The notes: generated by a model from the letters alone, not told the origin. A stretch of 64,000 nt of DNA from Iphione sp. A-MEVVRFRX5 (GCA_976226885.1 OZ320316.1:78058001-78122000), one strand, 5' to 3'. Positions 8,457 through 59,898 are shown, counted from the first letter of the stretch. Numbers and translations: made by a program.

Positions 8457-8584
8457 NNNNNNNNNNNNNNNNNNNNNNNNNNNNNNNNNNNNNNNNNNNN
8501 NNNNNNNNNNNNNNNNNNNNNNNNNNNNNNNNNNNNNNNNNNNNNNNNNNNNNNNNNNNNNNNNNNNNNNNNNNNNNNNNNNNN
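8457..8584. other. Assembly gap (128 N)
   Basis: Run of N. Confidence 1.
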
Positions 8585-12000: not shown

Positions 12001-12299
12001 CATTGGATTTCCCGTTATCAATGTGTTGGGATCTATTCTGAGTAGACCGCTTGAGGTTCGCGGAAAGCAGGAGGTATTATCTCGTCCTGTTGTCTCAGGT
12101 CATTTTAATTTTCTCATTCAGTGACCTAATATCTTTCGGTGGGAGGGCGGTGTTCTCACCACGACCTAGCCATCGATCACATGCCTTTACTTGAAGCGAA
12201 GGATCCACCCGGCTACGCCCCAGACCACATCCTGTCCGACACGCCTCCCCTACTGGCGTCCCCAAGGGATTACATCCCTCCCCTGGTTCTGACGCCCAC

Positions 12300-12924
12300 C
12301 GCAGAGTAATGCATCAAGCCCTGGAGTTTAGTACCTTAGAGGTTACCACCCCCTGTCAGTATAGCAGTCGTTGACTAGCGGGTGTTCTACATTATACAGT
12401 ACATTGGACGCCTTCGATCGTATGCGTTCCCACCTAGCTTTTGTCATCTGTGGCGCAACTTGCAGCTCTGTGTCATTGCAAAGGGACTCTTTCTGGGGAT
12501 TTTCTCGGACCTTTCCTCCGCACGTGCTTGAGCTCGGGTTGCCGGTCGCCGGCTGTGAAAATCAATCGCTGTCAGAGCACGCTGCCGGAGACAGGGAGGG
12601 AGAGAGCCATCGATTGCCTGTCGGGTTGCTGCAATAGCGCCACACCGCCTCTTGCTGGTCGCCTCCGGGGCACACTGGCGGCGCGCCGCAGTGGTGGTCG
12701 GCCTGCCAACTGCCACCACCACCGCCACTTGTGCTCTGGCTTGGGGACGCGTCGGGCGCATTCTAGGAGCACCGGCTGCTCTTGCTTGATGGCCTGCTGG
12801 CGTACTGAGAAGGCACACCGTTCACCTATCCTTTTTTCGCTGAACGGCACGCCACGCTGCTGGTCTGAGATACACATCTGCGACATCCGCAAACGTAACT
12901 TTGATTAGGCACAGCTGCTTGACC
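12300..12924 (+). promoter_or_regulatory. GC/CpG-rich segment upstream of the putative start codon: candidate promoter / 5' UTR
   Basis: Visibly GC- and CpG-rich relative to the flanks, and it runs directly into the gaccATG of exon 1. The TSS cannot be located from sequence alone. Confidence 0.4.
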
Positions 12925-13012
12925 ATGTTGACCGTAGTCTGGATTTTATTGGTTTACCTGACTGCCTTCAAGTGGAAACAATCCGTGGGATTTAACATTG
13001 ACCATCAAGGAG
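12925..13012 (+). CDS. Putative first coding exon: signal peptide MLTVVWILLVYLTAFKWKQSVG-FNIDHQG
   Basis: The ATG is in gaccATG context and is followed by a hydrophobic h-region and a plausible SVG|F cleavage site. The exon ends at a perfect GAG|GTAAGT donor in phase 1, which matches the next exon. A GC/CpG-rich region lies upstream. The link across a 19-kb intron is inferred. Confidence 0.6.
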
Positions 13013-16000
13013 GTAAGTCTTACTGGACAGCTATGTTTACTTACTTAAATGACTGCCACGGCAAGCGAGCCAGCGTAAATATAGAACTTCTAGGATAAGT
13101 TTGCACCTTTCTCCCTCTCTGAGAACATTGATCCTGTGACTAATGAGGCGATCAGGTACTCCTCTGGAAGACCATTGTTAGCCATTGACCGAAGACTCTA
13201 TAACGCTAGTGGGACCATACGCAAGGACCAATCTGGCATCGATCCCGACGGCCGCAGGATTACGGATACTAGGCCCTCGTGATGCGTCAGTAATTGGCAC
13301 TTAGGTGATAAAACCTCTTGAAGCGTAGCATTAAGCTATCGACCAAATGCACAAATAGAACATCCTTACCATTGATGCTTGTTTTGGAACATTTACTCGA
13401 CGAGTTTGTGTTCGTAGGTTCTCAATGTTTGCTTCTTTATATCTGTGTTTTCAGTCGATCCCTTTCACAAAATTACTTAGAACACACTATTTTTAAAACT
13501 TTCCTTTGATTTTAGAGTGATAATTTTTTAAAATTCTAAATGCCATAAAATATGTAAGACACCATCCTTCATGACCATATCCCAGCGTATAGGCAAGACC
13601 CTTTTAGTTCTCGCTTTCCCCCGGTATGCTAAACCGCTGAATAAAATGCCTCTTCTTGGATGCCTTTGGCTGCAACAAATGGTATTGGCAATGTCCCTGG
13701 GGGCACGAGGCGCCGCGGTTGTTGAAATGAAGAGAAGCGATGATAAGGCCTCGAGCTTTAAGCATTTAAAGTATATGCAGTGATCACTCTTTGACCGCAT
13801 TTAGAACTAGATATGTTAGTTTTAGGCTTTGCGGTACGGGATTTCTTACATTCTCATCATGAAAGATTACCTATTACAGAATGTATGTAGGTTAAGGGTA
13901 ATCCCTGCGCTGACCTATTTCACCTTCGTGAGGCATTGTGTGAGCCACAGGAGAGGAGAAATTTCGTATCACATTTCCATTTCTGATTCGCCCACAGGAA
14001 ATGACCTAACAACAAGAGCTACAAATGACCTTAGCACGGTTAATGTCCTACTGTGAATGCCTTGTCGTGCTGCTCTGAAAGCGGCTCGTCAATATGTACA
14101 TAGATAGAGAGGCGCACAGTTTATTCAACTGATTCTGTGCTACTTTCTTTACTACTGCTTACAAGTAAGACGTTCGTAAGAAGGTAGGCGTTTGCTACGT
14201 TGCTCTCCATGGTTACCAAGACTAGAAACTGTGGCATCTCCGTCGGATGTTAGCTGCCACCAGGCCGAGCTAGCAGGTCACCCAGTAACCGCACTGACGG
14301 CGCCAAGGCCGGTGGCGCCTATAAGCAGCATGCTTAATTTTCTACACCGTCAGAGCGTGCACGGACCATCAGTCCGAAAACGCAATTTAGCCGGCTGAGC
14401 AGGTATTGATTCACACTTTAGGAAAGGCGTTGATCCCCACTTCGTGATCATAGTACTCTGAAGGCCACTAAACTTAGTCATCAGCCATTCTCCTTATTTG
14501 TCATCATTGCCTTCTCACGGGCTGCTTTGCCCATTTCACGATCAGGTCCCTTTGGGACTCATTTAGAGTAGGCCTCCAATGGTTACTTGGCACTTGTACC
14601 GTCGATTTGTGTCCTCGATGTGTGTTTTAAAATGATGCTTTTGTTCTTTCATTTAGTTCCTAATATAAATTACTTCACTGAGGGAAGTCATAATGGAATG
14701 CCTTATTGAGTACTCTTGTCGGAAATTGGCTGCCGTCGTTTGTTCCAGCCACCAACCCTACTTCTAACGGAATTTCATTTTCCTGTCGCTGTGCATAAAA
14801 TGTTCTATTTGGTGCCGCTTAAGTGAACCTTTTCCAAATTTTTCGTCCAATCGATTGCAAGCTAAAACATATATTTTCAATGGAAGATTAGGCGACCTGT
14901 TTGACGCCCCTCTCAGTTTAAGGTCACGGGTAGATGTGTCCAAACGGCCCTGACCCTCGGCTCCGGCGTGGAGGTCCATAAAGGGGTCGTAAAAAGGTTA
15001 TCGATCACCCTCCGGCATGAGCTCTAAAATGAAAATGTATATGCCTTGTTTCCTGGCACGGGAGACGGCATCCACATAAAATCCGGCGCTAAATGCCTGC
15101 ACGGAATTCCGCCTGGGCGTGGCAGGGGCGTTCTGTTGGGCCCTCATTTTCAGCCAGGTGGTCATCGAACCGTTTCCCGATCCATCATGGGCCTGCCGCC
15201 AGGAGCACTGATCCCTTTTCTTGCCCTGTTCAATCCGGACTTTCCACCTCCTAACACCCTCTGTGCGGTACACCTAGTGCCAAACCTACCCCTGACAACA
15301 TCCTCTGGCTAGAAATTAAGGCAAATCAGTTGTAAAGTAGACCTGCCCTCCCCACCTCAAATAGGTTCCGCCCCCTGGCTTTTAAAGGAGACATGCAAAA
15401 GATTTACTGATCTTAACCAATCGCCGAGGCTCCCCCTACATCATGCAAAGGCAGCTTCCCGACCCTTATCCAGAACCAGCACTGATCACTGTCAAGAAAT
15501 CAGGGAGCCATTTTCGTTGAAAATTCTTGTTGCGACCACGAGTATTGGTTCAGCTGTTCCAACAGCAATCTGCGGGCATGCAGCGCGCGTGTGCCCTCTA
15601 TCAGCTTCTTGTCTCACCCTCTGAGCGAGAGGTAATTCAACCCACGTCTTCCCTGCGTTACCTATAATGCTAGCAGGACAGATATGTACCCGCACATCAA
15701 GTTGGGCAGCCTTGATAAAAACAAGTATTGACAATCAATTCCTCTCATACCTTTCAGCGTCGCGTGGCACGTAGCCGGCGCGCAAGGCAGACGTGCCGGC
15801 CATGACAGCAGCAAGCACTCGTTGCTGATATCAAGGCTTGCCTATTGTCAAGGCCTCCCGGATCGGATATTGATATATGACCACAGCGTGTGATAGTGCA
15901 TTTATTTGGGAAGTGTATGAGGCTGGGTGAAGTATTAAGACTTCCAGTGATGACATTATATGAAGGATTGGTCGTTGTCTACTATGATGCGCCCTGATGT

Positions 16001-19000
16001 ACAAATCTACCAGCGCATCCAGACTCTGAATTAAGGCGACGGTCTACACAATATTTTATCATAATATTCACACTGGTCGCATGCCACCAGAACATAATGA
16101 TAGCATTAAAACAGGAGTTTTACGGCCTCAGTTGGCCGGCTGTAAAAGTAGTTCCCAGCAATATTGTTTGTGCCACCCTGACCCACAGGTTTCATGGCTT
16201 CATATCAATAAACCCCTCCAGTACATGACACCTATACAGATATACATAGCTTTGCTTAGTTAGATTCAATAAACATAGTTTACTACGGCTGGGAATGGAC
16301 ATTTAATGTATTATGCGTTATGTGGGTAATAAATTGATATGTCACACTGCAGATATATTTGAAGAATGATCCTAATATTCTGGATTTCTATCTGTTCGAA
16401 AAAAAAAACACTTCAGATAGGAACCCTTGAATATAGTTATGTACAGCTGAACAATTGTCTGTTAACCATGTAATCAACCTCGATTTCACTGTGTTTAATA
16501 CTTATCCTAGATGGCATTGGGTCGGTGAAGGTTTCGATGTGGTAAAGTCTAGGTGCATGGTTCATACATTGGAAGGTTCGTGTCGTCGTTACGATAATAG
16601 ATAAATATTGATTTTCATGCCGAACCCATCGCTCATGCATGTGGATTTCCTGACAGTGCACATTAATATTCGTAGATAGGAGAATTATCGAGTTTCCTAT
16701 TATTCGTTGAAGGGATTTTAAAAAATAAGAATGAGTATTTGTCTTTTCCTTGGTCAAGAGAACTCTCCCCTTCCGACGTCACTTCAGCGGCAATTACATG
16801 CAGTGGATCAGTCACTTTTTTAACGGGCTATCGGGCGACTAAAGCTATGGATGAGTGTCCAGGGTGTACTAAAGACTGTCATGGTCACTGTGGCATAGTA
16901 CTCTGGCGGCCGTAGGCTTTTTAAAATGCATTAAGTGTACTGTGTTCCCTAGCTCTTCCTGGGCAGGGATAAGTATTACTTTGACGACCGTAGGTTCATT
17001 CCCTCGGTGCCACTAACCCTATGGTATGCGGGCCTAAAGGTGCGCTGGGGAACGGTTAGAAGCGTGATGCATGATTGTGGCAAGTCTATTTTTCAACACA
17101 GGTCAGACTGTTCTAAAATGAGGAACGTTAGATGCGTAAGGACACTTTTGCTTAAAGGCATCATTTTCGTGGCTATTATTTGCAAATCTGAAGCAAAAAT
17201 TTACCTGAAAAGTTAGGTATTCACATGGAAAAATCTGACAGATCATGTCTTCAGTGCAAGGCTCTCATTAGCATGCAATAAAAGCATTTACCTGTTTAGA
17301 AGGTGTTCTTTTTGGTTAGGAAATGGCGTTTCTACCTGGGCAGGGGCCATGATCTCTGCAGTAAGTTATGGGATGGGTGCATTTTCAGTGTGCTTCAATC
17401 CGTCATGGAAAAGAGATGTCTTAGACGAGTTTGAAGTGAAGCGAGGGGAAAATCATGCAATAGGAACTTCCGCATCATGCTCTTTCAACATAGCCTTACA
17501 TTCGTTTCTTTTTCGGAACACCCGCTTCTAACCTTTGTTTATGAGTTTAATTAGTCAATAATAGTTGTGCCTATGGCACATATACGGAACAATGACAAGC
17601 GCTATACTAAACGCATAACTGAAGTCATGGGCCTAGGGAATTCGTTTTACATCATTCCAGAAGTTTGTGACAGATTCAATTTTGAGCTGCGCTCATCGGA
17701 ACGCGCATCTTTCGGCTCGAACAAACAGATATTAAGCCGGACTAATTAATCATTCATGGCCGTGTCCCGCATATCAAGCAGAGTTAAAAGACCTATCCCG
17801 CTTAACTTTGCACCGAGTCATCGATTTCCGCTTCGACGGTGAGTCTGGCTTTACAACCATGTTCAAGAGCCGTGACATATATGCCCCATCTTACTTTTAT
17901 TACGTCACGCACTAAGCTATAAAACGGGCGAGTACATGTTGGCCCACTACTCGCCCCCACCTGCTCCTGGTTGCAAGGGTGGGCTCGGTGCTACTTGCAC
18001 TCTGCTGGTACATGAGCGAATTGAAAATGGCATGACATTCAGCACCTTGCTCGGGACCGTCGGCGAATTGCCGAGACTCCCTCTATTGGGATGGCGACCG
18101 ATTGCTGCCAGGCGTCTCAACAGGGCCTCAAAAGACACTGCGTCTAATCAATGACGGGGCATGATTCGATTTGACAGACCTCAGTCGTGGGAATGGGCCC
18201 ACTTTGTACAACCTATAACTCAGATGGCTGGCCCATCGAGCCCCACGCGGTAATGCTTCCGGTGAGCCTGAGCTATTAATGTTTCATCCTTAATTTCTCT
18301 TCCCGGTTCGTGTGCCTCAAGTGCGCATTAAGTTTTATCGATGCAGCTGATTAAAAAAGACACGGTTTCACGCTCGGCCCCTCTTGAGCTCCCAGGCCCC
18401 AGCACGGCCACCCCGCAAGCACCGTCCATTTGGCCCTCGGCTGTGAGCCGAAGCCCACTCAGCTGCCGGTCTGGCGGGGCTAGTTTACATTAGTTTATAT
18501 CTGCACGGCAAATACCACGGGGACCCTATCTACACACGGTCACCAGCCGCAGGGTGAGGAATGATAGGTATCGTATGGAAGGCGGACACCGTGCCCAATA
18601 ACGACAGCATGGCTGGCTGCGGATTTGTTTAGTGATCAATAGCTACTGTCCTGTACAGCTACATATGGGGATTACTTCGACCATACAACACTACCTCCAA
18701 GGAACATGACAACAGGCTTCGGAAAAATATTCCCCAGCGACAATAACCTACAAGACAATGTGGAGATGGAACCGCAGTGGAAATAATGCCAAGCGCTCTT
18801 CTCGCTGCCTCATTTGGTTTCTGAAAATGATCCTTGTGGGTCCTCCTTACCCTTAGTTGCTCCATTAGAACAACTAACAATGGTCCAGCCTTAATATTAG
18901 ACACATGGTACAAATGGACGAAATATTTGGTTTCTGAAAATGATACTTGTGGATCCTCCTTACCCTTGGTTGCTCCATTAGAACAACTAACAATGGTCCA

Positions 19001-22000
19001 GCCTTAATATTAGACACATGGAACCAATTGACGAAATGGTCATTGATCGCTTCCTTTTGACCAATTCAGTATCTCTAAAGCGTCAGGTGGAGGTGGGCTC
19101 TCTTTAATCTTGAAACTGATTCATCGTCACATGGCATGTTTGTCGATTCGTTTACGGTTATGAAAGCAGATCATGTCAGTAAATGATCACTGCTTGCACT
19201 AAATTTACATTGTACAGTCATAACGAAGGCTGGCAGAATGCAGCAGGGTAAAAGAATAAAAGAAGAGATTATGCTACTGAATTGCATGTAATTAACAAAT
19301 CATTGAAAGGATCAGTCTTAACGCTCATTAATATCAATAATTAAATCTTCACGACTTGAACTGACTGATGGCTCTCTTCCCCGAGATGCAAAATGTGTTC
19401 CTGCCGAGTGTGAATGATCTGGGGAATAAGATATTATTGTCACACGTACCAAACCTTGCAATATGTGGAACCGATTACCCTAAATCCGAAATTACAAGCC
19501 CTTGATACAGCCTAACTGCGTATTGTTATATCGTGAGTAGGGAAAGTAGCATAGAAAATTGTAAAGGATACCGTTCCTCTTGCGTCGCTAAAAACTTCTC
19601 AAGTTAAAAATGCAGGAATCCAAGGTGTTTTTACAATGACATTTACCTTCCAAAGTGAGCGAGTATGACTGAGATATATGATGATTTTATTGATGAATCC
19701 AAAGGTTGCTTTGTTGAGGCATTATCATCTGAACTGATGGAACATACAATCATGATAGCCCGACTGGTTCGCAAGAGTAGTAGACCCTAGCCCGTTCAGG
19801 GATTTCGTATTATACATTCCTGTCTGCAAAAATATGTGAGTGTGCGAACCTGACATATCTGAGAGGAACTGTTTTGTATGTGGACTTTCCGACTGGAATA
19901 AATAGGAAATATGGGACAGTACAAGTTCGATTGGGAGTCGAAACTAGAAAGCTTGATCTGTTCTTGGTGCTTTAAATTAGTTCCTTGCGGAACCTACAAT
20001 AACATCGATCATTACAATATCTCCTCGGCCCCAGTGACAATGAACTTCAGAAACAACTTCCATAATTATTATGTCGGTCCAAACAGAAGGATATTGGTCT
20101 CCATCAGCTCTGCTTGGCGCTAGATACCACCACACATAATTTCATCTGCTACAAGATAACGTTTCAACGTTGGCTCTTCCATGTCCTGCCTTCTGGGTGT
20201 TGCTTCTGTGTAGAGCCGAAGCAGGTTGTCGACAGTGATGCCACCTGTCCAGATGGGATGCTTTGTTGGTGTCACTTTACTATGGTGCCATGCCGTTGTT
20301 CCCTATGTCGGGGTGCCTTCCCACCGTATGGGCCGGCTCTTGCTTGTCCCATAGGGCCGTTAATCAGACGCTGGCAGTAGATGGATTGAATGTTGAGGAG
20401 AGGAGTCGCTAAGAGAAGGATAGGGGATTTCAACCAAACACCCCCGCCCCCGACTTCAAAAACGGCTGCCGCTGAGCCTTGATGATTGATACCGGAAGCG
20501 GGTAAAACTCACGTGATTACGGAAAGACAAGCTAACATGGCCGGCAGCAATCAACATCAAGGGAACCTGTAGCACGGTCCGCCACGCCCTCACAAACTTC
20601 CGGCTTCTTTTATACCGAGGTAGATAACAATTTTCTCCCACAAGCCAAAAAAAGGCAAGCGGCTGCTGATTTGCTGATCATTAGCATGATCAGCCTTGTA
20701 ATTACGCGTTATCTGCATGGGCTGGCCTGTGCATTCCCTTGTTATGATCCGTGAAGGATAAAAATAAGGGAGTTCTTTTTTAATCTGATCCCCCAACCAA
20801 ATTTGCTTCAAGTTGTATTTCAGGCCACTGGAGCGCAAACATTAATGTAAAGGTTAAATTGAGGGGATGCATAATTATGCCAATGATGGCAACGATTTCT
20901 GCCTCCTCAGTTTAAGAAAACGTAGTGGTGGAAACCTGTCTTCTAATTGACTGTTTCATAATAGCTATTTATGACTGCTCTTCTTATGGAAATGTAATGC
21001 GATACAAACAAGAGGTGAGAGGAGCACCGCTCGGCAGCCTGTCACAACAAGGTATTCTGACACACTTCACCACTTCGCTCCTAGTGGTAGCTACCCTTGT
21101 CGGTGCCACCAGGGAATGGGATGGAGGTATCCCTCAGGGTCAACGCAAGCAAAGCCGGCTAATTAGGCCGCCGGCTAGAGGACAAGATGAAACACTGATG
21201 AACAACACTCAGCCGCAGGCAGGACAGCGCTGATTCCGTTCCACGCAATCAGCCACCGGTGGGCTTCAGGCAGCTATTGGGGGCTCTAGTGTTGTGCCTT
21301 TCCAATATCGAAAATAGACCTGGCTTTTCTTCTTGTCGAAATTCATGGAAATATCTAACGCCAGTAACAAAGTAACAAAGACAGCCATAGCAGAGACATG
21401 ATATTTATGGTAGTTTTTCCTCTGGCAAGAAAAGTCCCACATAAAAAGGATCCGCTGGTTAAGTCCTGGGATGACTCTATCGAGGAAAGGTCAACTTGGT
21501 CGCATGCAGTTGACCTGACCTTTACTGGGCATGCCATGACTGCTCCAAAACCACTAAGAAATCAAATATTCTTGGTCGGTCGCGAGCAGGATTGGAGCTT
21601 GATGGAAGGTCTAATTTTATTCGTAAATTTACCGCTTTACACTTGTATTTCCTGCTAGGAAGGTGCATAATAAATCAGTGTCGCACATTTTATTCTAGGA
21701 ATGGCGAATTTTATCTCAATAATTCTGTCTTATGGGTGTATAGCCAAATCTCTTGATCATAACTGTTCCGAAATCCAGGTGTATAGTTTGTGGGGCGCGT
21801 TTGCGATATGTTCAATATTGTAGAGTCAGAATATGATAGAGGGTTGGTAGTATAAATAACTTGGAATAATTTAAGACAGGTGTGGAGTTGGAGGGTTTCG
21901 CTCTGGAGCATTGGCTCCTCGGGAAGACAAGGATTTATACCAGTTGCTGATGGCAGCCTCTCAAGGCCGCCCCCACCACCTGTGTCCACCTGATAAGCCG

Positions 22001-25000
22001 TGCTCTGCCAGCCACCAGGGCATCCATAAAGCTCCTTCCGGATCAGGGACACCACTGCCCTCCCGGATCAAGGTGGAACCAGCAGGTGAAGCGGTGACGA
22101 TCCTTCATCTTTACCCGGGTCTTGGTTCTTTCTTCATTCAGATATCCTCTGTCTGACAGAGAGGACACGCCCGGCCGGCCAGCTGACAGATTCGCCGGGT
22201 CGTGAATCTCAGCCAGGTCGTCCACCGACTAGGCATGATTCCTAAATTGACAAGCATATGATGAAATATGTGTTCCTCTAACAAGTATCAAATTAAAGCA
22301 AAGACCACGAATTTTGTAGCAACTAAAGGCCTCCTGGATATTTCCCATGCAAAGTAACAGTGAATTACAAATGAATTGTGTGTATCAGTCTTTGGTGATC
22401 CTAACCTATGCTATAGGGATGAAAGTGCTGAAGTCATGAGCAGGCAACTATACGGATATATACGGACGTGTGTATAGATAATGTACCTTTAGGTGTGCGC
22501 TTTCGTTGGAACATTTCATGAGGCGTGCACACTGACATTGTGACTGCAATACATGTACACAAAAAGCATCTCACCGTGGGGATTTCTTCTCCTTTCAAAC
22601 AAGGAATTGACTTAACATAGTCTCGACTAAATATAATAGCACGTGCTCCCAGGCTACTTAGACCCAGCACATGAGTATCCATACCATATAGAATTGTAGC
22701 TTCATACAGCAGGGCAACTTGTCGATCCACTTGACAATAGTGCTGCCATAGAAAATAACAGTCGGTCCATATCATTTGGGCCAATTTCGGCAGTACGTAT
22801 GTCTAGCTTTGAACGGAATGTGGATATTCCATTATGATATCGCCAGCTGGACTATCCAAATACGTTGGGCTGTATTGAGGTCGACATGACCGCCTCTGTT
22901 GCCCTTAAGCTGTTGTTGACCTCGACCCATCTATTTGATCCTAAAGGTCACCGTGAGTGCGCGGACGGCTCCACCGCCAACTGCCGTCACATTTCTATTC
23001 ATATTTCTATTTTTTTTTATCCATTCTTTTGATGTATAAATGCGGTGTTGGATGTTCAGTCATTGCGTATCTTTTACCTGTATGTGCTTTAAGCGAATTT
23101 TACGGGGAATGTATCCTGCTAAGTCCCGTCTCACTGGAATTTCACGGTATAAATCTTAACAGTACATGCATTTCAAACTCAAATCATGACCGCAAGAAAA
23201 TTCTCATAATACAATATGTCTGACAATAGGCCGTGATCGTATAGTGGTTAGTACTTCTCGTTGTGGCCGAGACAACCCAGGTTCGAATCCTGGTCACGGC
23301 AGAGGCTGTGCAGTCTCTATCACGGATAGTCAGGCTGATAATTTTACACTTTTGGTCGAAAAATCAATTTTAGGGTTTCATAATGCAAAGACACATTCAT
23401 GAAAAAAATCAACATGGTCGCTTTAAGAACCCAGGACTTTGGTATCTAAAGTGATAAAGTTGGAATCACCGAAGGCTACGATACCCTACAAAATGTAAAC
23501 GTCCTTGTACCTGTATATCAGTGGGCTCATGTCCTATTGATCAATTTAAGTGACTCACGGCAGAGCCTTTAAGTTTAAGTAACACTCTCTCCCCTCTCAG
23601 TCTGTCCCTCTCTGTCTCACTATGGAGAGAGATAATCAATATTGCCCATTACACTGTACGTATCTCCCGACCTGAGCTCAAAGCATGGTAACTGGAATGA
23701 GCAATTTGGCACATTGTCCCTCACTGCATTCATTAATACAGCCAAACACCTATTGACGACCATACCTATTTCTGATCAAAACCAGAAATACGATCATTTG
23801 AACTAAAAACGCAGGTCTATACATAATCGATAGTTCAAGATATTAGCATGACCACTATTAGGACCTTGCTAGTTAAAGTCATCACTTCTTGACCCTTAGT
23901 GGTCAAATTCACCACTTTAAGGAGTTAACTCATCAAATGCAGCACTGTTGGGACCCTTACTTGTTAAACTCAGGCCGCCCCCCAAAAAATAGGTGTGTTT
24001 CAGGTAAGAACCACCCAAAACCTAGATAGGGAGGGGGTATCTTTTTTTAGATTTTTTTCCAGTTTCTTCCTCTGGTTTTCAATAATAATAAAGACAATGT
24101 CAAGAATTTTGATCAATCTAAATAAGTTTTACAGTTTTTTTGGTGAATTTACTTTCAGCCAGATACACTTCATAGACAGTGGGAAATATTAACTACAGGA
24201 AATATCAGTTTGAGCAGACACAAACCAGAATTCCATTGTTGTTCCATATGCTTCTTCTACAAACAAGTATCAGGTCGGGAGATAGCTAGAAAAAACACTA
24301 TGAATCGAGAGATTTCTGCAATATGGATAGCCTTTCCTAATAATATCCAACTGTTTCATTGTTTCTTTTTCGTAATGCAAGCACATTGCTCTTCTGCACA
24401 TGCATTGTTGGGCCTATACAAGTGTCCTATAGGGCTCTGGTTGCATTTCTTCCATTGTAAATATATAGTCATATGATTCTGATCCTATCCATCCATATTA
24501 CACCGATAGTATTCATCTATATTTCAGTTTTCAGTCATATCCCACCATTCCGATCATATAAGTGGTAGGTATAGCATGAGGAAAGCACCGTATGCGAAAT
24601 GTAGGGATTAAGGAGGTGCCGCCGAATCAATCCTTACTCAGCAATATTTCAAGTAGCAGTCGTCCTGACGTCTGTCAAGCGTCAACTATGCAACAACACA
24701 AATTATAACTTCGGGCTAACTTCCATACATGCATTATTGCATTTTTTACATGATATGGCACATCAACCCTAGTCCTGATGCCATTTCCCACACCCTACTT
24801 GTGTGATTGTATTCGTTTGTATTGTGTTAATGTTACATTGCAATAATTATGCAGTGCATCAAAATGAAAGGAGGTGTGTCCATACTTGTGTTGCATTAGT
24901 CCTTTAATGTTTGCATTGGGTTTGCACTGATGATTTTTGGACATTGCTTGTGCAACACAACAGAATGCACAAGTATGATGTGCGAAATAGCGTTAGGACA

Positions 25001-49000: not shown

Positions 49001-52000
49001 AAAAAAACGCTCGATTGTACAGTGTCCGTCGATAAAATGTCGTAGACCCATTTTTTATGTAGGCCAAGCGGCCATGTGGCCGTGTTTTAGGCTTGTAGGC
49101 ATGTTTGCATGACCCCCCAGAAAACTTCCTGGCTACGGGCCTGCATACTTCAGAGTATCATCTGAGATAGGACCACCTGATCAACAGCCCACCAAAGCGC
49201 CAGCCATTCAAAGCAGACAGAAATAAGATTAAAATAGAAGAATCAGAGCAAATGACAATCTAACCCACCGGGGAGGTAGAGGTTGGCAGATGTACGCCTG
49301 TGTGCTGCAATGCCCTAAAGTCAGCATTATACATGTACATGTATTTAACTGGCAAGCTCATATAATCTTCTAACTTCCATCCCACCACAACACACTAGGT
49401 GTCCCTCGGAGACTTCAAAACCATGAAGCTCTAAAGAATACATGAGAAACTTATTGCTGAATATCATTCAGATAAAACAACTCAAAATTCTTAGCATGGC
49501 CCCACATGTCCTTCTTTGTGATTTCAGACAACACCAGACCAAGCCATCACCTCCTTGGACCACCTAGCTAGAGTAGAAGTAGAAACCAAGAAAACGGAAA
49601 AAGCAAGAAAATGGCATTTTCCCCCTGTGCCCTGAAAGCCTGAGTAGTGGAAATTTAATCTCTCAAATAAGTAACAACACACAAAGCAGGATCAGAAGAG
49701 GCTGGAATCTTGAGTTTTGAGGCTGACTTGCCATTCTGAGATTGTTTAAATGTCTTGGTAAAAGAAATCTAGACTTAACTATCCTTCAAATCATGGATAT
49801 TTGTCAACGGGATATTGTAAATGGTCTGTATCCTGCCAGAAGTAGCTAACAGAGGCAATATGTTGCACTTTAGAGTCAACTGTTTAAGGCGTAAGGAAGC
49901 AGCAAGATGCCAAGACTTAAGGAAATTCAGTACAGACCGAACATCCAATGTATGGTCTACCATAGCAACATGTAGATTGACATTGAAAAAACTGTAAACA
50001 GCTTATCGACATCAGGATGCTTACCAAAATCGAAGCCCTCAAACTTGAGGGAGCACCACAAACAAGGCATTTCTGGCTGTATCGAAGGCACTGTGCCCAA
50101 TTCATGACTCATAGAGCTGCATGACAAAAGCCATTCCCTGGTTCACGGTAGGATTCAAAAGGTCATAATTCCTCCTGCAGCACAAGGCATCCAGCCTTCT
50201 TAGATATGAATCATACATCAACATGGTTTTGGGCTTCCAGGAATCAAGCTTATAACAGCCCTCATAAACCCCATCGGATCTTTTTCAGCCAAGAGAGCTT
50301 TCAAAAAAGAACTGCCATAAGCTTTCTAACCCAAAGATGTGATGGATCCCCCCCCTGTAGTCCAAGATGTTGAATCTGCTCTTCTTGAAGACCAGAGGAG
50401 GCTGGGAGGACAATTGAAGCAGCCTACTGTATCAAACCCTGTGTAGCCTTATGGGAACCATCAGGACAGCTCTGGGCCTATCTAACATTGGCTTGGCCAG
50501 AACCCTAGGAATGAGAGGAAAAGGAGTAGGGCAAATATAAGTAGGGTAAAGAAAGCAAGTTTCATTGAACAGAAAAAGTATCTGTAGCGGTAGTGGAACA
50601 CACCAACACAACACAGTGATTAAGTTTAAGTTGTTTTTAATGTCCCAACGTTTCGAACAATCTGTAGTTCTTCTTCAGGGGTCAAAAAGTATCTATATAG
50701 GAGGCAGAGGGATCAGGAAACCAGCTGAAATAGACAGACAATTTATAATTTAGCCTAGAGGCAAACAAGTCCACATCAGGCTGACCTCAGAAATTAACAA
50801 TAGCCTGGAAAAAAAGGGATTGACTACTCCAAATTATTTTGGAAATGTCTAGAGGCAAATTCAGCAGACATATTCTAAATCCCAGGAATATGGAAGGCAG
50901 AAACAAAAGCAGGCCTCTGCTCCAAGCAAAAACTTTTTTTTCAGTTCACATGTCTAGCAATAGCTGATTTTGAACCTCCCATTCTATTGACATAAGAAAT
51001 GGCTGTAGCATCATCAGAACAAAGTTTAACATGAAAGTTAGTAGAACGTTTGGAAAAAAAACACTTAAGAGCTAAGTAAACAATCCTAATTTCCAAACAG
51101 TTCATGTGCATATCAACTTTATGAGGCAAACATCTACCTCCAATGCTGGCATGATCCATATGGGTACCCAACCCAAACTCAGAAGCATCCGAGTAAAGAA
51201 TGTGAGGCAAAATAAGAGGCAAAAATGACACAGAAACTAAGGGCAAATTCTCCTGCCACCACTAAGGGTCACTCTTGGCAGCTTCAGCAAGACACATTCA
51301 CCCCTCATAGCCAGCAGGTCCAGCCTGGAAAAGAACCCATAACTTATTGGATTCCAGCCTCCTTAAATTATTTTTACCATAAGCTGAAGCCCTTGTAAGG
51401 ACAACCAACTTCCCAAGGACAGATGCCACATTTCTCATTGTATGTACATCCCCTGACAAAACAGTACCAATATTTTCAAAACCTTAACAACTGGGTAGGG
51501 TTCAAGGAATACTTCTCATGGTTAATAACTCCTGCCTCCCTAAAATGAGCCATGATCTTGGTGAAAATCTTATGGGCAGAACATCATACTCGAAGACCTA
51601 TTCCTGTCATCTAATGTAGAGGAACTTTCTGCAATGACTCCAAAATGACATTTTATGATAGGCATCCTATAAATCAATGGATGCCATATAGTATCCAGGG
51701 GTATTCAAAGAAAGAGCAGACTCAAATGTTTCCATTTTAAAATGCCTGTAAAAATAAGCCCTCTCAGGGACAGACTCAAGAAATGGACTGGAGATTTGAA
51801 AGTTTGGTCTTAACATATGACACCTCCTCCTCTGAAAAATTAATTGGCCTAGTGCTGAATGGCTGAAAAGGTCGTCCTTTAGATCAAGATGATCTGCAAC
51901 ACCTCTGCATTAGAGGTGAGAATTGCCTACTGCTTCCTATAGTATACATAGTATATAGTTGCCAGCCAGGATACTTGCTTTCCTCACCTGTGCAGACTGA

Positions 52001-55000
52001 GGGTGAGCTTGAGACTGCTGCTGCTCCTGAGTTGGCTGGGAACCTGGGCCTGATAGGCTATGGGGAGATGTCCCTGAACTACAGGAGAGCACTAGAGAGA
52101 CTCATAACCTTGGGTATGTTGGTAAATGAAGCTACTCCTGACTCTGGATTGGAATCTACCTCCTCCTCTGACCCTGACCCTGAGGAAAAAAGGCTTCTGT
52201 GCCTGAGGAGTCTGCATTTTCTTGAAATCCATGATAGCTACTAGTCTAGAGTTCTGCTGAACTACTTAGGCACTATCCATCAAGATATCACCAAACAATC
52301 ACTGGGCTGTTTGGAGACAATCTTCTGACACAATTTTCCTGAATTCTGGTGCCAATGCACGCTTAGCCTCCTCTCTCCTCAGCTTTATTATAGATTGGAC
52401 TGCTGAACCAGACAAGATGATGCAATCTGAGAGAACTTTAGACAAATTTGGAAGCTAGTCACAATCCTTGGCCTCAGTTCTGGGGTGGACCTCTTTTAAA
52501 GCCCTGAAGGCAGCAGTAAGGAACCCTCAGGAAATCGCTGCAAAGTCTTCTCCATGTCCTTCCCCTCCTTGGAATGTGCATTCCGAAGAGGCTCATTAAG
52601 TGGGCAAAGCCCAAAGCCATTCATTATCAGAAGGCATAGGATGGCTCTTCCTGAAACCAGACAAGAGATAAGGCTGCATGGGTCTAAGGGACAGAGAAGA
52701 AAACTTAGATATCAAGGTGTCCAAAGATGTCCCCAGCTTTGCTTCAACAGACATTTGCACCTTAGTGGCCCTCAAAGAACCAGGGTCCTCCTCAGACCCT
52801 TCAGGCCTGAGCTCACCCTCTTCTATCTCCTCCAAGTCATGAGCAGACCTATGCTTAGACCCTACCTCTCAAGCTCCTGGACATCTAGTAATATATTGAA
52901 CCATGCACAGGGCATCAATGAGCTCGACCAGCCCTTGCCCAGAGGTGATTCAGCCACTGTTCAACTATCACGCATGGTCTCCTCAGCCCTAAGGCACATG
53001 CATGGCCACCTCAGCAAGCACTAAATCATCCACTAACTTATGCTTTTTGCAGGACACACTAACATGCTTCTTGTTACTCTTATCAATATTGGTGGCTAGG
53101 GCCAACAATGAGAACTCCTGCATAGACATAGTACATGGACATAACTACAGGGTATACCAGCCCCTACCATCTGGCAAAAAAAATGGCATCCATAACACAC
53201 ACAATTTGAATTTTATCACCTCAACGTTAGTCCAGCATTCCAGAGATTGTCCAAAACTCTTGCCATGCAATACAAATGTGTACTTAGCGACTGTATTGCC
53301 CAGGACCAAATGTGAACACAGCACTTCATGGTCACTGTTGTTAGCAACCCTGACATGGTGAGCATTTTAAAAAGCCCATAACCATACATCATGCTTTTGT
53401 GTACGATCCTTGTGAGCTCATATGGCTATGGCATAATCATGTTGTCTCAGTCTCTGACTACAAGTGTACCTGCCCAAAACTGATATAAGCATCCTGGAGA
53501 CGACAGGCTTCATAATGAGGAACTCCTCTGATCTGACAGACACACTGCATTTCCACCAGAGGCAGGTCAGAGCATGTTACATTGGCTTAGGCTTGAGTCG
53601 CCAGCAGCTGTATCAAAGACTCTCAACGCCAATGAAGAGCTGCCATATAAACTACCATCATCCAGTAGGCTGCAAGCGTCTAGCTAAAGAAGTGCTGGGA
53701 GATATTATACCATCTGTAGCTCCTTGGAATAAAGGTTACAAACACTATATCCCACCTCTCATTTTCATATCACACTAATCACCAGAGTTGTAATAACAGC
53801 TTTTGTCCGTCATCTAAGAATATAAGTAGGACATTTAAAAGTTTGTAATTAAAATGTTTCCACCACAGAACATCATCAGTAGTGGCATGGTCCGAGTTGA
53901 AAGATAGCAACAAATATCCATAAACATGTACATGTATAATCTTAAGTTAATACAGCAGGATCCTGTGAAAAGATATTAGTAGTTGGCGCACTTGGGGGTG
54001 GAACTGCAAGACATGGATGCCAACTATGGCTCCTTGAGGCTGTAACGATGCCAGGATGAGATCATTAAGGAAAAAACTTATCTGGCATCTTGCCCGCCTG
54101 AAGCAGGTAACGGGGACCTTTGACGATCCAGTCACCCAGAAGTCCTTAAATACCTACTTGGATGTACAATAGCCTTGAGATGCCATCAAAAATGTCAAGC
54201 CTTTGTGAACTGTTTCAACAAGTATAAAGCTACCAGATAAGGAAGGAAAGATTAAAGATGACAGAAACCAGGCTAGTTTTGTCTCAAAAGATGACATCCC
54301 TTTGAATACCCTAGCCACATGGACAGTGGCAGGAAATCATCTTCAGATTACTCTCATCCTAGAGGAATTTAGGTCAGTGGATGCTGATTTAATTGTTCAC
54401 AACATGTATGATTGCAAATAGGAACAACACCATTCCAGCCACTCGTCTGATCAGGATGGAAAGGATAACCCATCATCTCAGGGCATATCCTCTAACACTG
54501 ATGAGGAGGATTCGAGAACGCTGTTAATAAACACCATCTGTTCCAGATGATTACAATGTATTCAAAAGTTCCTGATCTTCCTTAGAGGTAGAATCGGTGA
54601 TTGTGGCCTTCTTATGAAACCTTCCAGTACACAAATGTATATTGCGGCCTGTGACTCTACGTATAGACTTGTTTATAAAACATATTTGGTGGAATTTTAT
54701 TTTTCAAAATAGGCAATTTTAAGTCTTCGATGATTTTTTTATTAAGGAGATTCATATCCTCCCCGAAATCCTCTCCATTCTCTTTCGAATCCATACAAAG
54801 ATACATGCATGTCATGGTTGTAAGTAAAGCTATCGCCAATACCATCAAGACCCCTATCGTGATCAATCAGTACAAACTGGCGAGTGACGTGAACGCAAAA
54901 ATAGATAACCAATAATACGTGGTCCTTATTTGTCATGCATTAAAAACGAAAAAAATATAATGTACTTGTTCACATAGGCGAAAATCTCTCGGCTGGTGTA

Positions 55001-55986
55001 GAAAATGTCGAGTGTCATTTTCCGTACGATCACTTATTTAGGAATTCTGTAAATAAATGAAAGGGAAAAGGGGTTAATTCGTTTCTGTTTACAACCTGAC
55101 ATAATTCACAGAAAAAAATTATACTGCCGACTAGGATTTTAGACGGGTCTTTATATTCATTATCAAGAAAACTCAGAGCTGGGCACCCAAGGCAAAGTTG
55201 TCGCAACTATGTCGCATTTCTTATGGCCTCTGTCGCACGTTTTTTTGCGAAATGCGACAGGTTGCCAAGCCCTGTAACTATGGTTACTTTGTTTTTAATA
55301 ATGAGGTCCTTTGGAAGGAGTTCTATATCCTTCATGATTCGCATGTCTGTGATATAACGATAAAGATGAAAACCATTGCTGTGTCAGAGACGGGTGCAAT
55401 AAAACCATTACAAAACATTACATCTATTTCTTCCAGGAGGAATCGATGTTTAGCGCGTCGAAGCGAGTACGCGGCGTCGCCGCAGGAGAGTGAGGACGAG
55501 GAGCGAGACGACTACACCACGCCTTACTGCAAGCGCAACTCGGCCGCCGGCCTCGTCGATCAGGTCGAGCTGGTCAACTTGAACAACGACGGCAACTACG
55601 GCGCAGTGTGGAAGTCCCGCCCGCCGTCCTACTCGCCGGCGACGGGCCACCAGCAGCAACAGCAGCAACAATCCGTGGCTACGGTGGCCAGCGAGCGGCC
55701 CGACCGCGTCGAGCCGCCGCCGCCGCCGCCACCGCCGCCGCAGCCCCGAAACATGCAAAACCTAATCAACACGGACATGGCCTCGTCCAACGCGCCACCA
55801 GCCGCTGTCTCCATCCCAGCCGCTCCCCCGAAACCACCAGCCCCACCCAGCAGTCTCAGCGCTAAGCTGGCGGCCCTGACGTCGTTCCGGCCGCAGGAAG
55901 TGCACGTCTACGAGAGTCCCAAGTTTGTCCGGCGCGATGGAGAGAGTGTACCCACTGTGACGGGCGCACACCGGGAAGTGAGCTAA
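12925..55986 (+). CDS. Spliced gene model, join(12925..13012,31975..32259,35458..35895,38001..38159,45135..45222,55437..55986): type I membrane protein, SP-SUEL lectin-CUB-sushi-TM-Pro-rich tail, about 535 aa
   Basis: All five introns are GT-AG with pyrimidine-rich acceptors. Intron phases 1,1,1,1,2 chain without a stop, and the total is 1608 nt = 536 codons including TAA. The domain order makes a coherent receptor. Extra exons inside the large introns cannot be excluded. Confidence 0.8.
14550..15280 (-). mobile_element. Eroded Ty3/Gypsy integrase fragment at the start of intron 1
   Basis: QAHDGSGNGSMTTWLK (HD..GH.G..kT-like), IYVLACNRLDEKF (YILVVVDYFTK-like), HSDRKMKF (HSDQGRNF-like) and DFPQ*SN..ELNERTK (YHPQ.NG..ER.NRT-like) occur in the expected order. 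Confidence 0.45.
17300..17650 (+). mobile_element. LINE RT relic (RTE-like)
   Basis: LDEFEVKRGENHAIGTSASCSFNIAL resembles S..F.V.RG.RQGD.LS..LFNIAL. A CAYGT downstream lies near the YADD position. Confidence 0.35.
18812..19037. repeat. 113-bp tandem duplication, two near-identical copies
   Basis: atttggtttctgaaaatga...ttaatattagacacatgg...gacgaaat starts at 18812 and again at 18925 with only a few substitutions. Confidence 0.9.
23230..23301 (+). tRNA. trnH: tRNA-His (GTG), intact, inside intron 1
   Basis: Full cloverleaf: acceptor GCCGTGA/TCACGGC plus A73, anticodon stem TCTCG/CGAGA with loop TTGTGGC, T arm CCAGG-TTCGAAT-CCTGG. A and B boxes are intact, with T4 runs at 23342-23345 and 23350-23353 as pol III terminators. 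Confidence 0.96.
23972..24215. mobile_element. Partial second copy of the 2066-2417 MITE in inverted orientation
   Basis: aggccgccccccaaaaaataggtgtgttt...ggttttcaataataataaagacaatgtcaagaattttga...gttttacagtttttttggtgaattt is the diverged reverse complement of about 2160-2417. Confidence 0.75.
24950..26900 (+). mobile_element. Retroelement relic: SGNH/esterase-like ORF (25041-25470, one in-frame TAG) followed by degenerate, possibly AP-endonuclease-like sequence
   Basis: Reading through the TAG gives QEILNHIIVELNHELIKMN...IHKRLRGKWIFKVYKLADVCHLN, where DVCH matches the SGNH D-x-x-H block. The region is CpG-poor. Confidence 0.35.
26962..27088. mobile_element. Miniature inverted-repeat element (127 bp)
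   Basis: gaagtagcgggtagcgcggatgtaa at the left pairs with ttacgtccacgctacccacttc at the right. The centre contains aaccaatcaga. Confidence 0.55.
27800..29500 (-). mobile_element. Possible CR1/L2-like LINE relic (esterase-type ORF1 end plus endonuclease region)
   Basis: TRGIHLS (DGIHL-like) at about 29350. KYGLDVGYVPT (fgL.Q.V..PT-like) at about 28200. Very degenerate. Confidence 0.25.
28835..28887. repeat. Perfect 22-bp inverted repeat with a 9-nt loop
   Basis: acaatgttttcaaaaacgttac-agatgctca-gtaacgtttttgaaaacattgt. Confidence 0.9.
30392..30428. repeat. (AT)n microsatellite, interrupted
   Basis: Direct reading of the sequence. Confidence 0.9.
31975..32259 (+). CDS. Exon encoding a SUEL / rhamnose-binding-lectin-like domain
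   Basis: Acceptor ttcctttctcgatgcag, donor AAG|GTAAG, 285 nt, phase 1-1. Translation TQEYCPWENFNVTCAEDEVILMKSADYGRMQLGRC...CSGRRSC...KPC...YLKASYIC has the 8-Cys SUEL pattern and the A-x-YGR motif. Confidence 0.88.
32774..32806. repeat. (CCT)11 microsatellite
   Basis: Direct reading of the sequence. Confidence 0.95.
35458..35895 (+). CDS. Exon encoding a CUB-like domain
   Basis: Acceptor ttacctcttcttttcag, donor AAG|GTAAG, 438 nt, phase 1-1. It contains SGYLSS, CPWIIRADQGQRINVTLLDF, C..YAVI, VCGG, SNQNTVEIQL and FLLKFE, which track the CUB consensus. Confidence 0.88.
36955..37536. mobile_element. PIF/Harbinger (Tourist-like) MITE, 582 bp, with TAA target-site duplication
   Basis: TAA|GGGTCAGTTTCCTTACCTACGTTGGTGTCC ... 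GGACACCAATGCATGTAAGGAAACCGGCCC|TAA gives imperfect TIRs of about 30 bp. Internal repeats include ttcatggaga (three copies) and gaatttcagggagaaagtgt (two copies, 60 bp apart). Confidence 0.75.
38001..38159 (+). CDS. Exon encoding a sushi/CCP-like domain (absent from the ORF track)
   Basis: Acceptor tcttttccag, donor ATG|GTAAGT, 159 nt, phase 1-1. Translation IGCPVFVPPRDGVVEQIGNSIIVTCNHTRQRSYLRCNGKTWVGELRNCSPSD has four Cys and the C-x-G-x-x-W motif in CCP-like spacing. Confidence 0.82.
40689..40806. repeat. Degenerate (GACA)/(GA) simple repeat
   Basis: Run of gagagacaagcagacagacagcgacagag...agacagacagacaa. Confidence 0.75.
41860..42080 (-). mobile_element. LINE ORF2 C-terminal relic
   Basis: VWNHTRGSLERLHSLNRRTARFIHG resembles the W.P.....LE.VQRRAARFI.G segment of CR1/L2/Jockey ORF2. 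Confidence 0.35.
45135..45222 (+). CDS. Exon encoding the transmembrane helix and stop-transfer basic residues
   Basis: Acceptor catcttttacag, donor AAG|GTAAAT, 88 nt, phase 1-2. Translation (G)ILIVTAMGVALGLVIGVIMLTSVLFCLK(R) is a hydrophobic stretch followed by KR. Confidence 0.85.
46580..47151. repeat. Old diverged tandem duplication, unit about 360 bp
   Basis: ctgaaaaagtagggcc at 46580 and 46945. ttcagg(t/c)aacattttatataggtagtgtaac at 46761 and 47121. Confidence 0.65.
49290..53790 (-). mobile_element. Decayed DIRS1-type tyrosine-recombinase retrotransposon (gag-like ORF1, RT, RNase H, MTase-like domain, YR) in intron 5
   Basis: Minus-strand motifs in canonical order: LFGDIL (about 52290), HFKMETF and MASIDL*DAY (about 51660-51750), YSDASEFGLG...HMNCLE...DDATAISYVNRMGGSKS (50941-51246), DVDLFASRLN...PDP and FPLIPRVLAK (50490-50780), LDVRSVLNFLKSW...LKQLTLK...RIQT (49775-49963). 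There are many stops and frameshifts, and the ends are approximate. Confidence 0.88.
55174..55274. mobile_element. About 100-bp element with imperfect CAG-initiated TIRs
   Basis: cagagctgggcacc at the left versus gttgccaagccctg at the right. Internal tgtcgca occurs three times plus one inverted tgcgaca. No clear target-site duplication. Confidence 0.4.
55437..55986 (+). CDS. Terminal coding exon: cytoplasmic Pro/Gln-rich tail
   Basis: Acceptor atctatttcttccag in phase 2 continues KR|RRNRC, and codons become abruptly GC-rich from this point. Motifs: DDYTTP, RPPSY, poly-Q, EPPPPPPPPPQP, HVYESPKF. It ends at TAA 55984-55986. A possible donor GAA|GTGAGC just before the stop could extend the gene. 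Confidence 0.8.
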
Positions 55987-58934: not shown

Positions 58935-59613
58935 TTATTCTGGTAGAGGCTGCTTCTCCAACATCAACGGTGGGTAGGGCGAGCTGGTGCTAGGCGCAGA
59001 CGGCGTGGTGGGCGGCTCGCTGTTCTTGTTGTGGTTGTCTGGGTTCGCCCAAGAGTCCCACAAGGCGCAGATGATCTCGGTGACAGTGAGCGTGTTGGTG
59101 TTGTGGCCGATGAGCCGTAGAAGGAAGATGCCGTCGGCGCGCAGATACTTGCGCGTGAACTCGCTGGCCTTGTTGCGGTCCTCCTTCGAGTCGAGCCTCT
59201 CCAGGTACTTGAGGTGGCCCACGACGTAGTTGTTCTTGTCCGTGGCCGAGATGGCGCGCGCCACCCAGATAATGAGGCTGTACAGCGAGATGGCCGCCAC
59301 CGTGATGATCCAGAACCAGAGGAACATGAAGATCTTCTCGTTGTAGAGGTTGATAGGCAGTGTGCACTGCACCGTGTAGCGGTGGATGTTGCCCAGACGG
59401 CGCACGTTAAAATCGCACATGGTGACGCGCGGGAAGGCGACGAAGGGCGAGTTGGTCCAGTCGTGGTCGCTGACCATCCAGCGCATCACGTGGAAGCCAT
59501 ACACCGAGTAGTTGGTGCCAAGAAAGTAGTCGAGCATGAAGAGCTGACCGACGGCGTTGACGACGTACAAAACCTTGGTGACGATGTAGAGCACGACCAA
59601 GTAGGCACCGAAC
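58935..59613 (-). CDS. inx: Innexin (gap junction protein), last coding exon covering TM3, extracellular loop 2, TM4 and the C-terminal tail
   Basis: Minus-strand acceptor ccttcttctttccag precedes 59613. Translation (R)FGAYLVVLYIVTKVLY...FPRVTMCDF.VR.LGN.HRYTVQCTLPINLYNEKIFMFLWFW carries the innexin signatures. The TAA stop is followed by TGA. Upstream exons were not found in the window. Confidence 0.95.
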
Positions 59614-59752: not shown

Positions 59753-59898
59753 NNNNNNNNNNNNNNNNNNNNNNNNNNNNNNNNNNNNNNNNNNNNNNNN
59801 NNNNNNNNNNNNNNNNNNNNNNNNNNNNNNNNNNNNNNNNNNNNNNNNNNNNNNNNNNNNNNNNNNNNNNNNNNNNNNNNNNNNNNNNNNNNNNNNNN
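59753..59898. other. Assembly gap (146 N) in the innexin intron, followed by gagacagagacag (probably a collapsed simple repeat)
   Basis: Run of N; the flanking sequence is GA/GACA-like. Confidence 1.

Follow-up and report, generated by a model that had tools for sequence, protein, structure and literature searches.

A predicted seven-exon gene for a SUEL-CUB-CCP membrane protein in Iphione sp., and the annelid gene family to which it belongs

A 64,000-nucleotide stretch of the Iphione sp. A-MEVVRFRX5 genome (the window: G000:C10:78058001-78122000; genome of 1.18 Gb in 89 contigs) carries on its plus strand a series of short exons dispersed over 43 kb, and this raises the question of whether they form a single gene and, if so, what kind of receptor that gene would encode. 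The first-pass annotation had joined six such exons in frame into a protein of about 535 amino acids (aa), with a SUEL lectin domain, a CUB domain, a sushi (complement control protein, CCP) module and one transmembrane (TM) helix, and had suggested an undescribed, possibly lineage-expanded recognition receptor. Our analysis makes it likely that 12925-55986 (+) is a single gene, intact and under selective constraint, with seven coding exons and a 553-aa type I membrane protein as its predicted product (Table 1). The window as a whole has a GC content of 43% and contains two masked runs of N (8457-8584 and 59753-59898).

Gene structure and the orthologous locus

All six exons of the earlier model were recovered, with polypyrimidine-AG acceptors and donors reading GTAAGT, GTAAGA or GTAAAT; the phases are compatible throughout and no codon split across a junction is a stop. 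Every extracellular module (SUEL, CUB and sushi/CCP) is a single phase 1-1 exon, and the acceptor of the last exon (ttccag/G) is in frame with the TM exon. The six exons sum, as had been claimed, to 1608 nucleotides (nt), or 535 codons plus stop; that model had, however, overlooked a seventh exon of 54 nt, with which the coding sequence comes to 1662 nt and 553 aa (by arithmetic from exon lengths and phases).

All five full-length homologues (described below) gave the clue to this additional exon 5: a linker of ~20 residues separates their sushi-like module from the TM helix, and the six-exon model lacks it. When the nucleotide sequence was compared with that of the orthologous locus, exon 5 fell in a conserved block (40064-40133, 84% nt identity); its 18 encoded residues are 100% the same in the orthologue, the 8 of 54 nt that differ are all third-position and synonymous, and the splice sites match. 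The linker motif DWSSP[FY]G is also found in the homologue P0078 and in one paralogue (L076). As 54 is a multiple of three, an isoform skipping the exon would stay in frame, which is why the six-exon model looked complete; compatible frames alone are no proof that a spliced model is complete.

Table 1. Exons and conserved elements of the gene with coding span from ATG at 12925 to TAA at 55984-55986 (+). Identities are to the orthologous locus; pN and pS, proportions of non-synonymous and synonymous differences; Ka/Ks, ratio of non-synonymous to synonymous rates.
Feature	Position	Strand	Description	Comparison with orthologue
Coding exon 1 (probable)	12925-13012	+	phase 0-1; ATG, hydrophobic N-terminus MLTVVWILLVYLTAF..., presumed signal peptide; donor GAG/GTAAGT	
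Coding exon 2	31975-32259	+	phase 1-1; SUEL/rhamnose-binding-lectin-type domain, 8 Cys	protein identity 76%; pN 0.13, pS 0.82
Coding exon 3	35458-35895	+	phase 1-1; predicted divergent CUB, 4 Cys	protein identity 84-85%; Ka/Ks 0.04
Coding exon 4	38001-38159	+	phase 1-1; compact sushi/CCP-like module, C-x21-C-x10-C-x4-W-x6-C	protein identity 94%; nt identity 74%
Coding exon 5	40070-40123	+	54 nt, phase 1-1; juxtamembrane linker (E)DGETYWTVIGDDWSSPF(G); cag/AGGATG...CCGTTTG/gtacgt	protein identity 100%; nt identity 84%
Coding exon 6	45135-45222	+	phase 1-2; predicted TM helix, glycine zipper MGVALGLVIG, basic stop-transfer CLKR	protein identity 100%; 21/84 nt differ
Coding exon 7	55437-55986	+	phase 2-0; 183-codon predicted cytoplasmic tail, stop TAA 55984-55986	protein identity 66-69%
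Conserved non-coding element	39020-39321		intron between exons 4 and 5; single copy in genome	nt identity 82%
Conserved non-coding element	34340-34648		intron between exons 2 and 3; single copy in genome	nt identity 76%
Short conserved intronic blocks	14334-14510, 18129-18364, 20448-20549, 21965-22036			identity 76-82%
GC-rich patch	12251-12924		GC 0.58-0.59 vs 0.43 in window; directly upstream of start codon	

That the exons belong together is borne out, for exons 2-7, by a locus in another species. A HMMER scan with the CUB exon gave 1323 proteins at E<=0.001, mostly single-exon open reading frame (ORF) fragments, and the best match (P0001) comes from assembly ERZ25767047, where its contig measures 1.29 Mb; the best match to the tail (P0158) lies on the same contig and strand, ~25 kb downstream of that CUB exon. 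Exons 2-7 are all found on this one contig in the same order and on the same strand, with splice sites at identical positions. Nei-Gojobori counts between the two loci give pN of 0.03-0.13 against pS of 0.73-1.06, which is saturated. The 28 codons of the TM exon are protein-identical in three other loci (L068, L069 and L070); with L068 the nt identity is 75% and all 21 differences are synonymous. The nearest paralogue within the Iphione genome has a SUEL domain 57% identical, compared with 76% for the orthologue, which indicates that the duplications predate the split of the two species, that the ERZ25767047 locus is the true orthologue and that the gene has long been under strong purifying selection. 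Conservation with almost only synonymous change argues, in turn, against a pseudogene or a chance match of frames.

Both ctg38579 (L068) and ctg38735 (L069), two long contigs, carry the orthologous TM and tail exons in near-identical surroundings; these copies are probably two haplotypes kept in ERZ25767047, not a duplication.

The joining of exon 1 draws on statistics. The 32 kb upstream of exon 2 contain 283 candidates that start with ATG and end in phase 1 at a GT, and 12925-13012 is the only one to pair a strong donor with a hydrophobic core; the donor scores 7.7 bits with a simple consensus matrix, the values being reached by 0/200 shuffles. The length fits as well: 29 codons and three further residues come before 'EYC', in keeping with the 25-29 residues that precede EYC/EFC in the homologues. 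We regard it as the probable first coding exon. The orthologous contig ctg38579 was compared upstream to the equivalent of ~14.3 kb in the window, ~1.4 kb short of exon 1, and in that DNA the tblastn matches to exon 1 were noise only; candidates there with a donor and a hydrophobic stretch were set aside, being a TG-repeat artefact and one unaligned ORF. We also rejected exon 1 as part of the upstream paralogue (L077), a gene that ends ~31 kb before the window start.

Predicted domains and the sugar site

The SUEL exon matches PF02140 at 41-42 bits (cut-off 31.4) over model positions 1-80/80, so that the domain proposed earlier passes the gathering threshold across its whole length. Its product carries C5, C14, C34, C44, C56, C62, C77 and C92 and the motif ADYGR, which align with SUL-I and latrophilin. 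The best match in the PDB is the L-rhamnose-binding lectin SUL-I (5H4S; 8e-14), followed by latrophilin lectin domains (E 2.6e-4 to 1e-2). Soluble rhamnose-binding lectins (SUEL, SUL-I, CSL3) have the same fold, the eight cysteines and the YGR motif, but are secreted tandem repeats with an intact Glu/Asn/Asp site, in contrast to the single, predicted membrane-anchored domain encoded in the window.

It is this site that is altered. In SUL-I, the rhamnose contacts of domain 1 are Glu7, Asn71 and Asp76 (PMC10377782), and in a HMMER alignment these three residues fall on Pro, Thr and Lys of the window SUEL domain. The 'DPC' Asp is present in 0/37 SUEL domains of the family and the Glu in 5/37; in four aligned non-family SUEL exons of the same genome, 'DPC' is found in 3/4 and the Glu in 2/4, and the aligned domain of ADGRL2 also keeps the Glu and the 'DPC' Asp lost here. 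Because the contact residues are replaced, classical rhamnose or galactose binding by this domain is unlikely, and it may serve instead as a protein-binding module. The glycan or microbe sensing suggested in the first-pass annotation is weakened by these replacements, given that the Asp is gone in 37/37 family domains.

For exon 3 the identification as CUB comes from its relatives, the exon itself scoring under the PF00431 cut-off. The orthologue fragment P0001 reaches 21.6 bits and the homologue P0086 25.7 bits (positions 10-107/110), 30/42 family members match at E<=0.01 (best 1.1e-6), and a family profile run against the PDB finds CUB proteins alone (cubilin at 9.9e-8, then PCPE-1 and enteropeptidase). 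The exon has C14, C49, C89 and C107, the last two invariant in the family. By these sequence comparisons exon 3 is a divergent CUB domain.

The sushi assignment has a similar history, in that Pfam does not recognise the module while profile-profile comparison and the predicted fold do. None of 26 family members matches PF00084 at E<=1, and the family profile, run by sequence against the PDB, found no CCP protein; weak antibody V-domain matches of this exon were rejected as noise. A leading G-C, four Cys and a Trp are nevertheless invariant in 46 family sequences (G-C...C...C....W.G....C), the following Pro being nearly so, and hhalign pairs the module end to end with true sushi exons of the same genome (78.7% probability, E 1.7e-5), with the four Cys and the Trp aligned. 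An AlphaFold2 model built from the 46-sequence alignment has a predicted local distance difference test score (pLDDT) of 89.5; its top Foldseek matches are mostly CCP-containing proteins, but with E>0.3 for so small a domain, and the best 50 rows from VIA-align are all CCP modules (Z 4.5-5.8, root-mean-square deviation 1.9-3.1 Å, 47-52 residues), among them those of CD55, CD46, C4BP, MASP, C1s, factor H, E-selectin and IL-15Rα. We therefore accept exon 4 as a predicted compact CCP module, ~10 residues shorter than usual.

CUB and CCP modules are also combined in SEZ6/CSMD and in C1r/C1s/MASP, and the CCP modules of MASP and C1s are, as listed, among the structural matches of the window module; SEZ6 is single-pass as well and is a feature-space neighbour at 0.86, which we take as a lead. 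These proteins differ in having no SUEL domain, in carrying several alternating CUB/sushi units or a protease domain, and in that their sushi modules are of normal length and recognised by Pfam.

The TM exon has a mean hydropathy of 2.62 over 21 aa, and its helix contains a GxxxGxxxG glycine zipper, which is found in 10/14 TM segments of the family, including that of Capitella; helix-helix packing in the membrane would be its simplest reading. A hydrophobic N-terminus, five N-x-S/T sequons in the head and KRRNR after the TM helix fit a type I topology. The 183-residue tail is largely disordered, with an acidic cluster, NYGAVWKSRPPSY, a poly-Pro run and HVYESPKFVRR. Across seven tails of the orthologue group, invariant positions are concentrated in NYGAxWKxRPPSY and HVYESPKFxxR, and HxYESP recurs in 4/5 distant homologues (as HxYESPx[FYL]xRR) and in 7/12 paralogues. 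A search of the genome with the tail matched only the gene itself, so that paralogue tails are not conserved beyond short motifs, and a Pfam search of the tail at E<=10 gave noise only, with no FAM176 match. Neither the exons nor the full-length homologues contain GAIN/GPS and seven-transmembrane domains of latrophilin type, and there is a single TM exon. Taken together, the sequence supports the single-pass receptor proposed earlier: one gene, with a predicted type I product in which SUEL, CUB and sushi-like modules are followed by a TM helix and then by the cytoplasmic tail.

The gene family and its possible function

The family of the window gene is old and numbers at least 32 genes in this genome; its recorded relatives are annelid, and none has been characterised. 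When exons of the genome were chained by contig, strand and order, at least 32 loci had SUEL, CUB and sushi exons in that order on the same strand, which bears out the suspected lineage expansion; partial chains, as lower bounds, were SUEL-CUB at 14 loci, CUB-sushi at 6 and SUEL-sushi at 4. Exon copies in the genome number at least 72 for SUEL, 63 for CUB-like and 44 for CCP-like modules. Fourteen of the 32 full chains are on C10, where a nine-gene cluster at 77.39-78.10 Mb includes seven with the full three-exon order; the window gene is the last member of this cluster, and a further paralogue lies at C10:86.54 Mb. Closer study of 12 paralogues showed that the 10 kb beyond the ectodomain exons contain a TM-like segment with a basic stop-transfer in 9 of them and H[IV]YESP in 7. 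At G000:C10:77697553-77715343 two family members lie tail to tail (HVYESP of the plus-strand gene at ~77701533, sushi exon of the minus-strand gene at 77711150), positions that require their 3′ ends to share ~10 kb.

Several homologues are uninterrupted ORFs on short contigs, which we took as spliced transcripts: P0029 (622 aa/2426 nt), P0086 (517 aa/2057 nt), P0082 (651 aa/2525 nt) and P0078 (456 aa/1661 nt). Exons 2, 3, 4, 6 and 7 are colinear with all four (in P0078 at positions 29-120, 124-251, 255-302, 323-350 and 437-452) and with Capitella teleta CAPTEDRAFT_228921. The element order (SUEL, CUB, CCP, linker, Gly-zipper TM and HxYESPxF tail) is common to P0078, P0156, P0029, P0082 and the paralogues. 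A word search starting from P0078 found only the Capitella protein ('hypothetical protein', 509 aa), and one with the alignment of five homologues returned only two of its own members.

This Capitella protein falls in an ESM Atlas cluster of 106 members named 'SUEL-type lectin domain-containing protein', for which the recorded phyla are all Annelida. Like the window protein it has a signal peptide, SUEL, CUB-like and CCP-like modules, a linker, a Gly-zipper TM segment and a tail with HIYESPKF, and the ectodomains are 36-46% identical over the colinear exons; it belongs, however, to another orthologue group, and its tail differs beyond YESP, having an extra YYHEFD and no PPSY. The claim of an undescribed receptor thus holds in part: the protein is uncharacterised, its sole named relative being a 'hypothetical protein', but sequences of the family are already public under the SUEL-type name. 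Full-text searches of the literature found no description of a SUEL-CUB-sushi-TM receptor, and the novelty is that of an uncharacterised arrangement of well-known modules.

As a tentative proposal, possible but short of probable, we suggest that the gene encodes a cell-surface recognition or scaffold receptor that oligomerises and signals through phosphotyrosine. Its SUEL-CUB-CCP head would bind a protein partner or a non-canonical glycan, and, since the classical contact residues are replaced, it is probably not a classical rhamnose/galactose binder. The GxxxGxxxG helix could pack the receptor into dimers or against a membrane partner, and the tail would be read by cytoplasmic adaptors. PPxY is the canonical ligand of WW domains, and the invariant PPSY might serve to bind Nedd4-type ligases or other WW-domain proteins, leading to turnover or sorting; the family-wide HxYESPxF tyrosine might, once phosphorylated, be read by an SH2 adaptor, its YxxP form being that of the DCBLD-CRKL recruitment. 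In DCBLD1/2, Fyn or Abl phosphorylates the YxxP tyrosines, to which the SH2 domain of CRKL is then recruited (PMC6029619). DCBLD1 and DCBLD2 (ESDN) also resemble the predicted protein in being single-pass, with a CUB-containing head and a disordered tail, and YESP has the same form as their YxxP motifs; but they have LCCL and discoidin domains, not SUEL and CCP, and several YxxP motifs against one conserved motif here, so that we use them as an analogy.

A number of observations weigh against this account of the gene and its product. The support for exon 1 is statistical, the compared DNA of the orthologue ending ~1.4 kb short of it, and a six-exon isoform that skips the 54-nt exon may exist. 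The CUB exon of the window scores 19.6 bits against PF00431, below the 21.4 cut-off, with only the first half of the domain matching, and its single-sequence AlphaFold2 model is poor (pLDDT 46.5; about ten strands). Owing to its small size (52 aa), the CCP module reaches only modest structural Z-scores (<6). The lost sugar triad may still be compatible with glycan binding through other residues; and the tail motifs are short, with PPSY limited to this orthologue group.

Other explanations have to be set beside it. If the exons were not one functional gene, they would be relics, a pseudogene or frame-compatible parts of separate transcripts, and exon 1, which sits 19 kb from exon 2 and outside the conserved set of exons 2-7, would suit this; yet the frames are all open with six consensus splice junctions, the order of exons 2-7 is conserved in another species with change almost wholly synonymous, and the SUEL-CUB-sushi order recurs in 32 loci and in uninterrupted transcript-like ORFs, so that we hold this to be very improbable. 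A different possibility concerns the ligand: the protein could be a membrane-bound pattern-recognition lectin, its SUEL domain binding microbial or self glycans (rhamnose, galactosides, lipopolysaccharide (LPS)) and the expanded family forming an innate-immune or allorecognition repertoire. The SUEL fold is clear; the family has many members, including tandem clusters of long standing, and heads and tails diverge strongly among paralogues, diversity of a sort that is common in immune receptor families. Binding of sugars or LPS is on record for SUEL lectins from fish, urchins and a bivalve (PMC8878817, PMC8350385), and annelid transcriptome work lists SUEL lectins as candidate recognition proteins (PMC5117596). 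The replaced rhamnose contacts make such a function unlikely, however, as does the loss of the key Asp from 37/37 family domains when most other SUEL domains of the genome keep it; and the selection on the orthologues is strongly purifying, not diversifying.

We think it quite unlikely, too, that the protein acts in guidance or adhesion as a co-receptor resembling EVA-1/EVA1C or latrophilin, with a SUEL domain that binds a secreted or trans-cellular protein ligand and a tail coupled to the cytoskeleton, although several features would agree with this. The Slit co-receptor EVA-1 of C. elegans and its vertebrate counterpart EVA1C are likewise single-pass type I proteins with a SUEL-type head; the lectin domains of latrophilins, which bind proteins, are the next-best PDB matches; a degenerate sugar site suits protein binding; the tail has a poly-Pro run and PPSY; and EVA1C appears in the Atlas structural list (TM 0.27-0.30, to be read as a lead). 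But EVA-1/EVA1C have two SUEL domains and a FAM176 tail (in the Atlas, PF02140 100% and PF14851 100%), whereas the window protein has one SUEL domain, no Pfam match to the FAM176 tail domain at E<=10, and CUB and CCP modules, which EVA-1 lacks; and more than 30 paralogues would be unusual for such a protein. The latrophilins (ADGRL1-3, LAT-1) have an N-terminal SUEL/rhamnose-binding lectin domain that is the next-closest solved relative, but go on with olfactomedin, HormR, GAIN and seven-transmembrane domains.

A reading wider and more doubtful than that of a single recognition or scaffold receptor sees in the 32 or more genes a diversified repertoire of surface receptors specific to annelids: their lectin-derived heads would now recognise proteins or non-classical ligands, and a Gly-zipper TM assembly with one phosphotyrosine docking motif, HxYESPxF, would provide a signalling route shared by all members. 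Its ligands, if so, might be self/non-self, symbiont, gamete or chemosensory, and such a system would have no described counterpart in model animals. We know of no annelid surface-receptor family that is well studied; the role of SUEL-type proteins in lophotrochozoans has been called 'elusive' in review (PMC8878817). With this locus, a large receptor family that so far carried only 'hypothetical' annotations has one member whose gene model is fully resolved; this member has a SUEL domain that lacks the classical sugar site, a TM zipper kept identical between species despite saturated synonymous sites and a tyrosine motif common to Capitella. A recognition repertoire, if that is what the family proves to form, would open a new way into the study of annelid immunity, symbiosis or cell-cell recognition; otherwise the result is the correct annotation of an ordinary modular receptor.

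Candidate regulatory elements and neighbouring features

The introns contain several conserved blocks (Table 1), of which the element at 39020-39321 exceeds the coding exons in nt conservation and has long perfect blocks. It was rejected as an exon, having stops in all three plus-strand frames, and as a repeat, being present in a single copy. It contains AAGATGGCGGC, which we take to be a match to the YY1 consensus, and it could be an internal promoter or enhancer; the other conserved blocks, including 34340-34648, are candidate regulatory elements. The GC-rich patch before the start codon is possibly 5′ untranslated region or promoter, and its CpG observed/expected ratio is not distinctive. 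A simple dinucleotide repeat at 30383-30428 matches repeats of the orthologous intron and has no significance. The intronic ORFs at 37146-37520, 38636-39133, 42490-42879, 50941-51246, 51975-52244 and 52554-53024 belong to no Pfam family and were rejected as exons.

Intron 1 also houses a tRNA-His (GTG) gene at 23230-23301 (+), with an Rfam score of 61.9 bits and agreement from ARAGORN. Just downstream of the receptor gene, abutting the N run at 59753-59898, lies a large innexin exon on the opposite strand (58938-59600, PF00876, E 3.9e-54, model positions 160-332/333). Some 440 kb beyond the window, at G000:C10:78562182-78572087, an open frame of 2452 codons that consists almost wholly of tandem canonical sushi repeats, with more than 25 Pfam matches, appears to be a giant single-exon poly-CCP gene.

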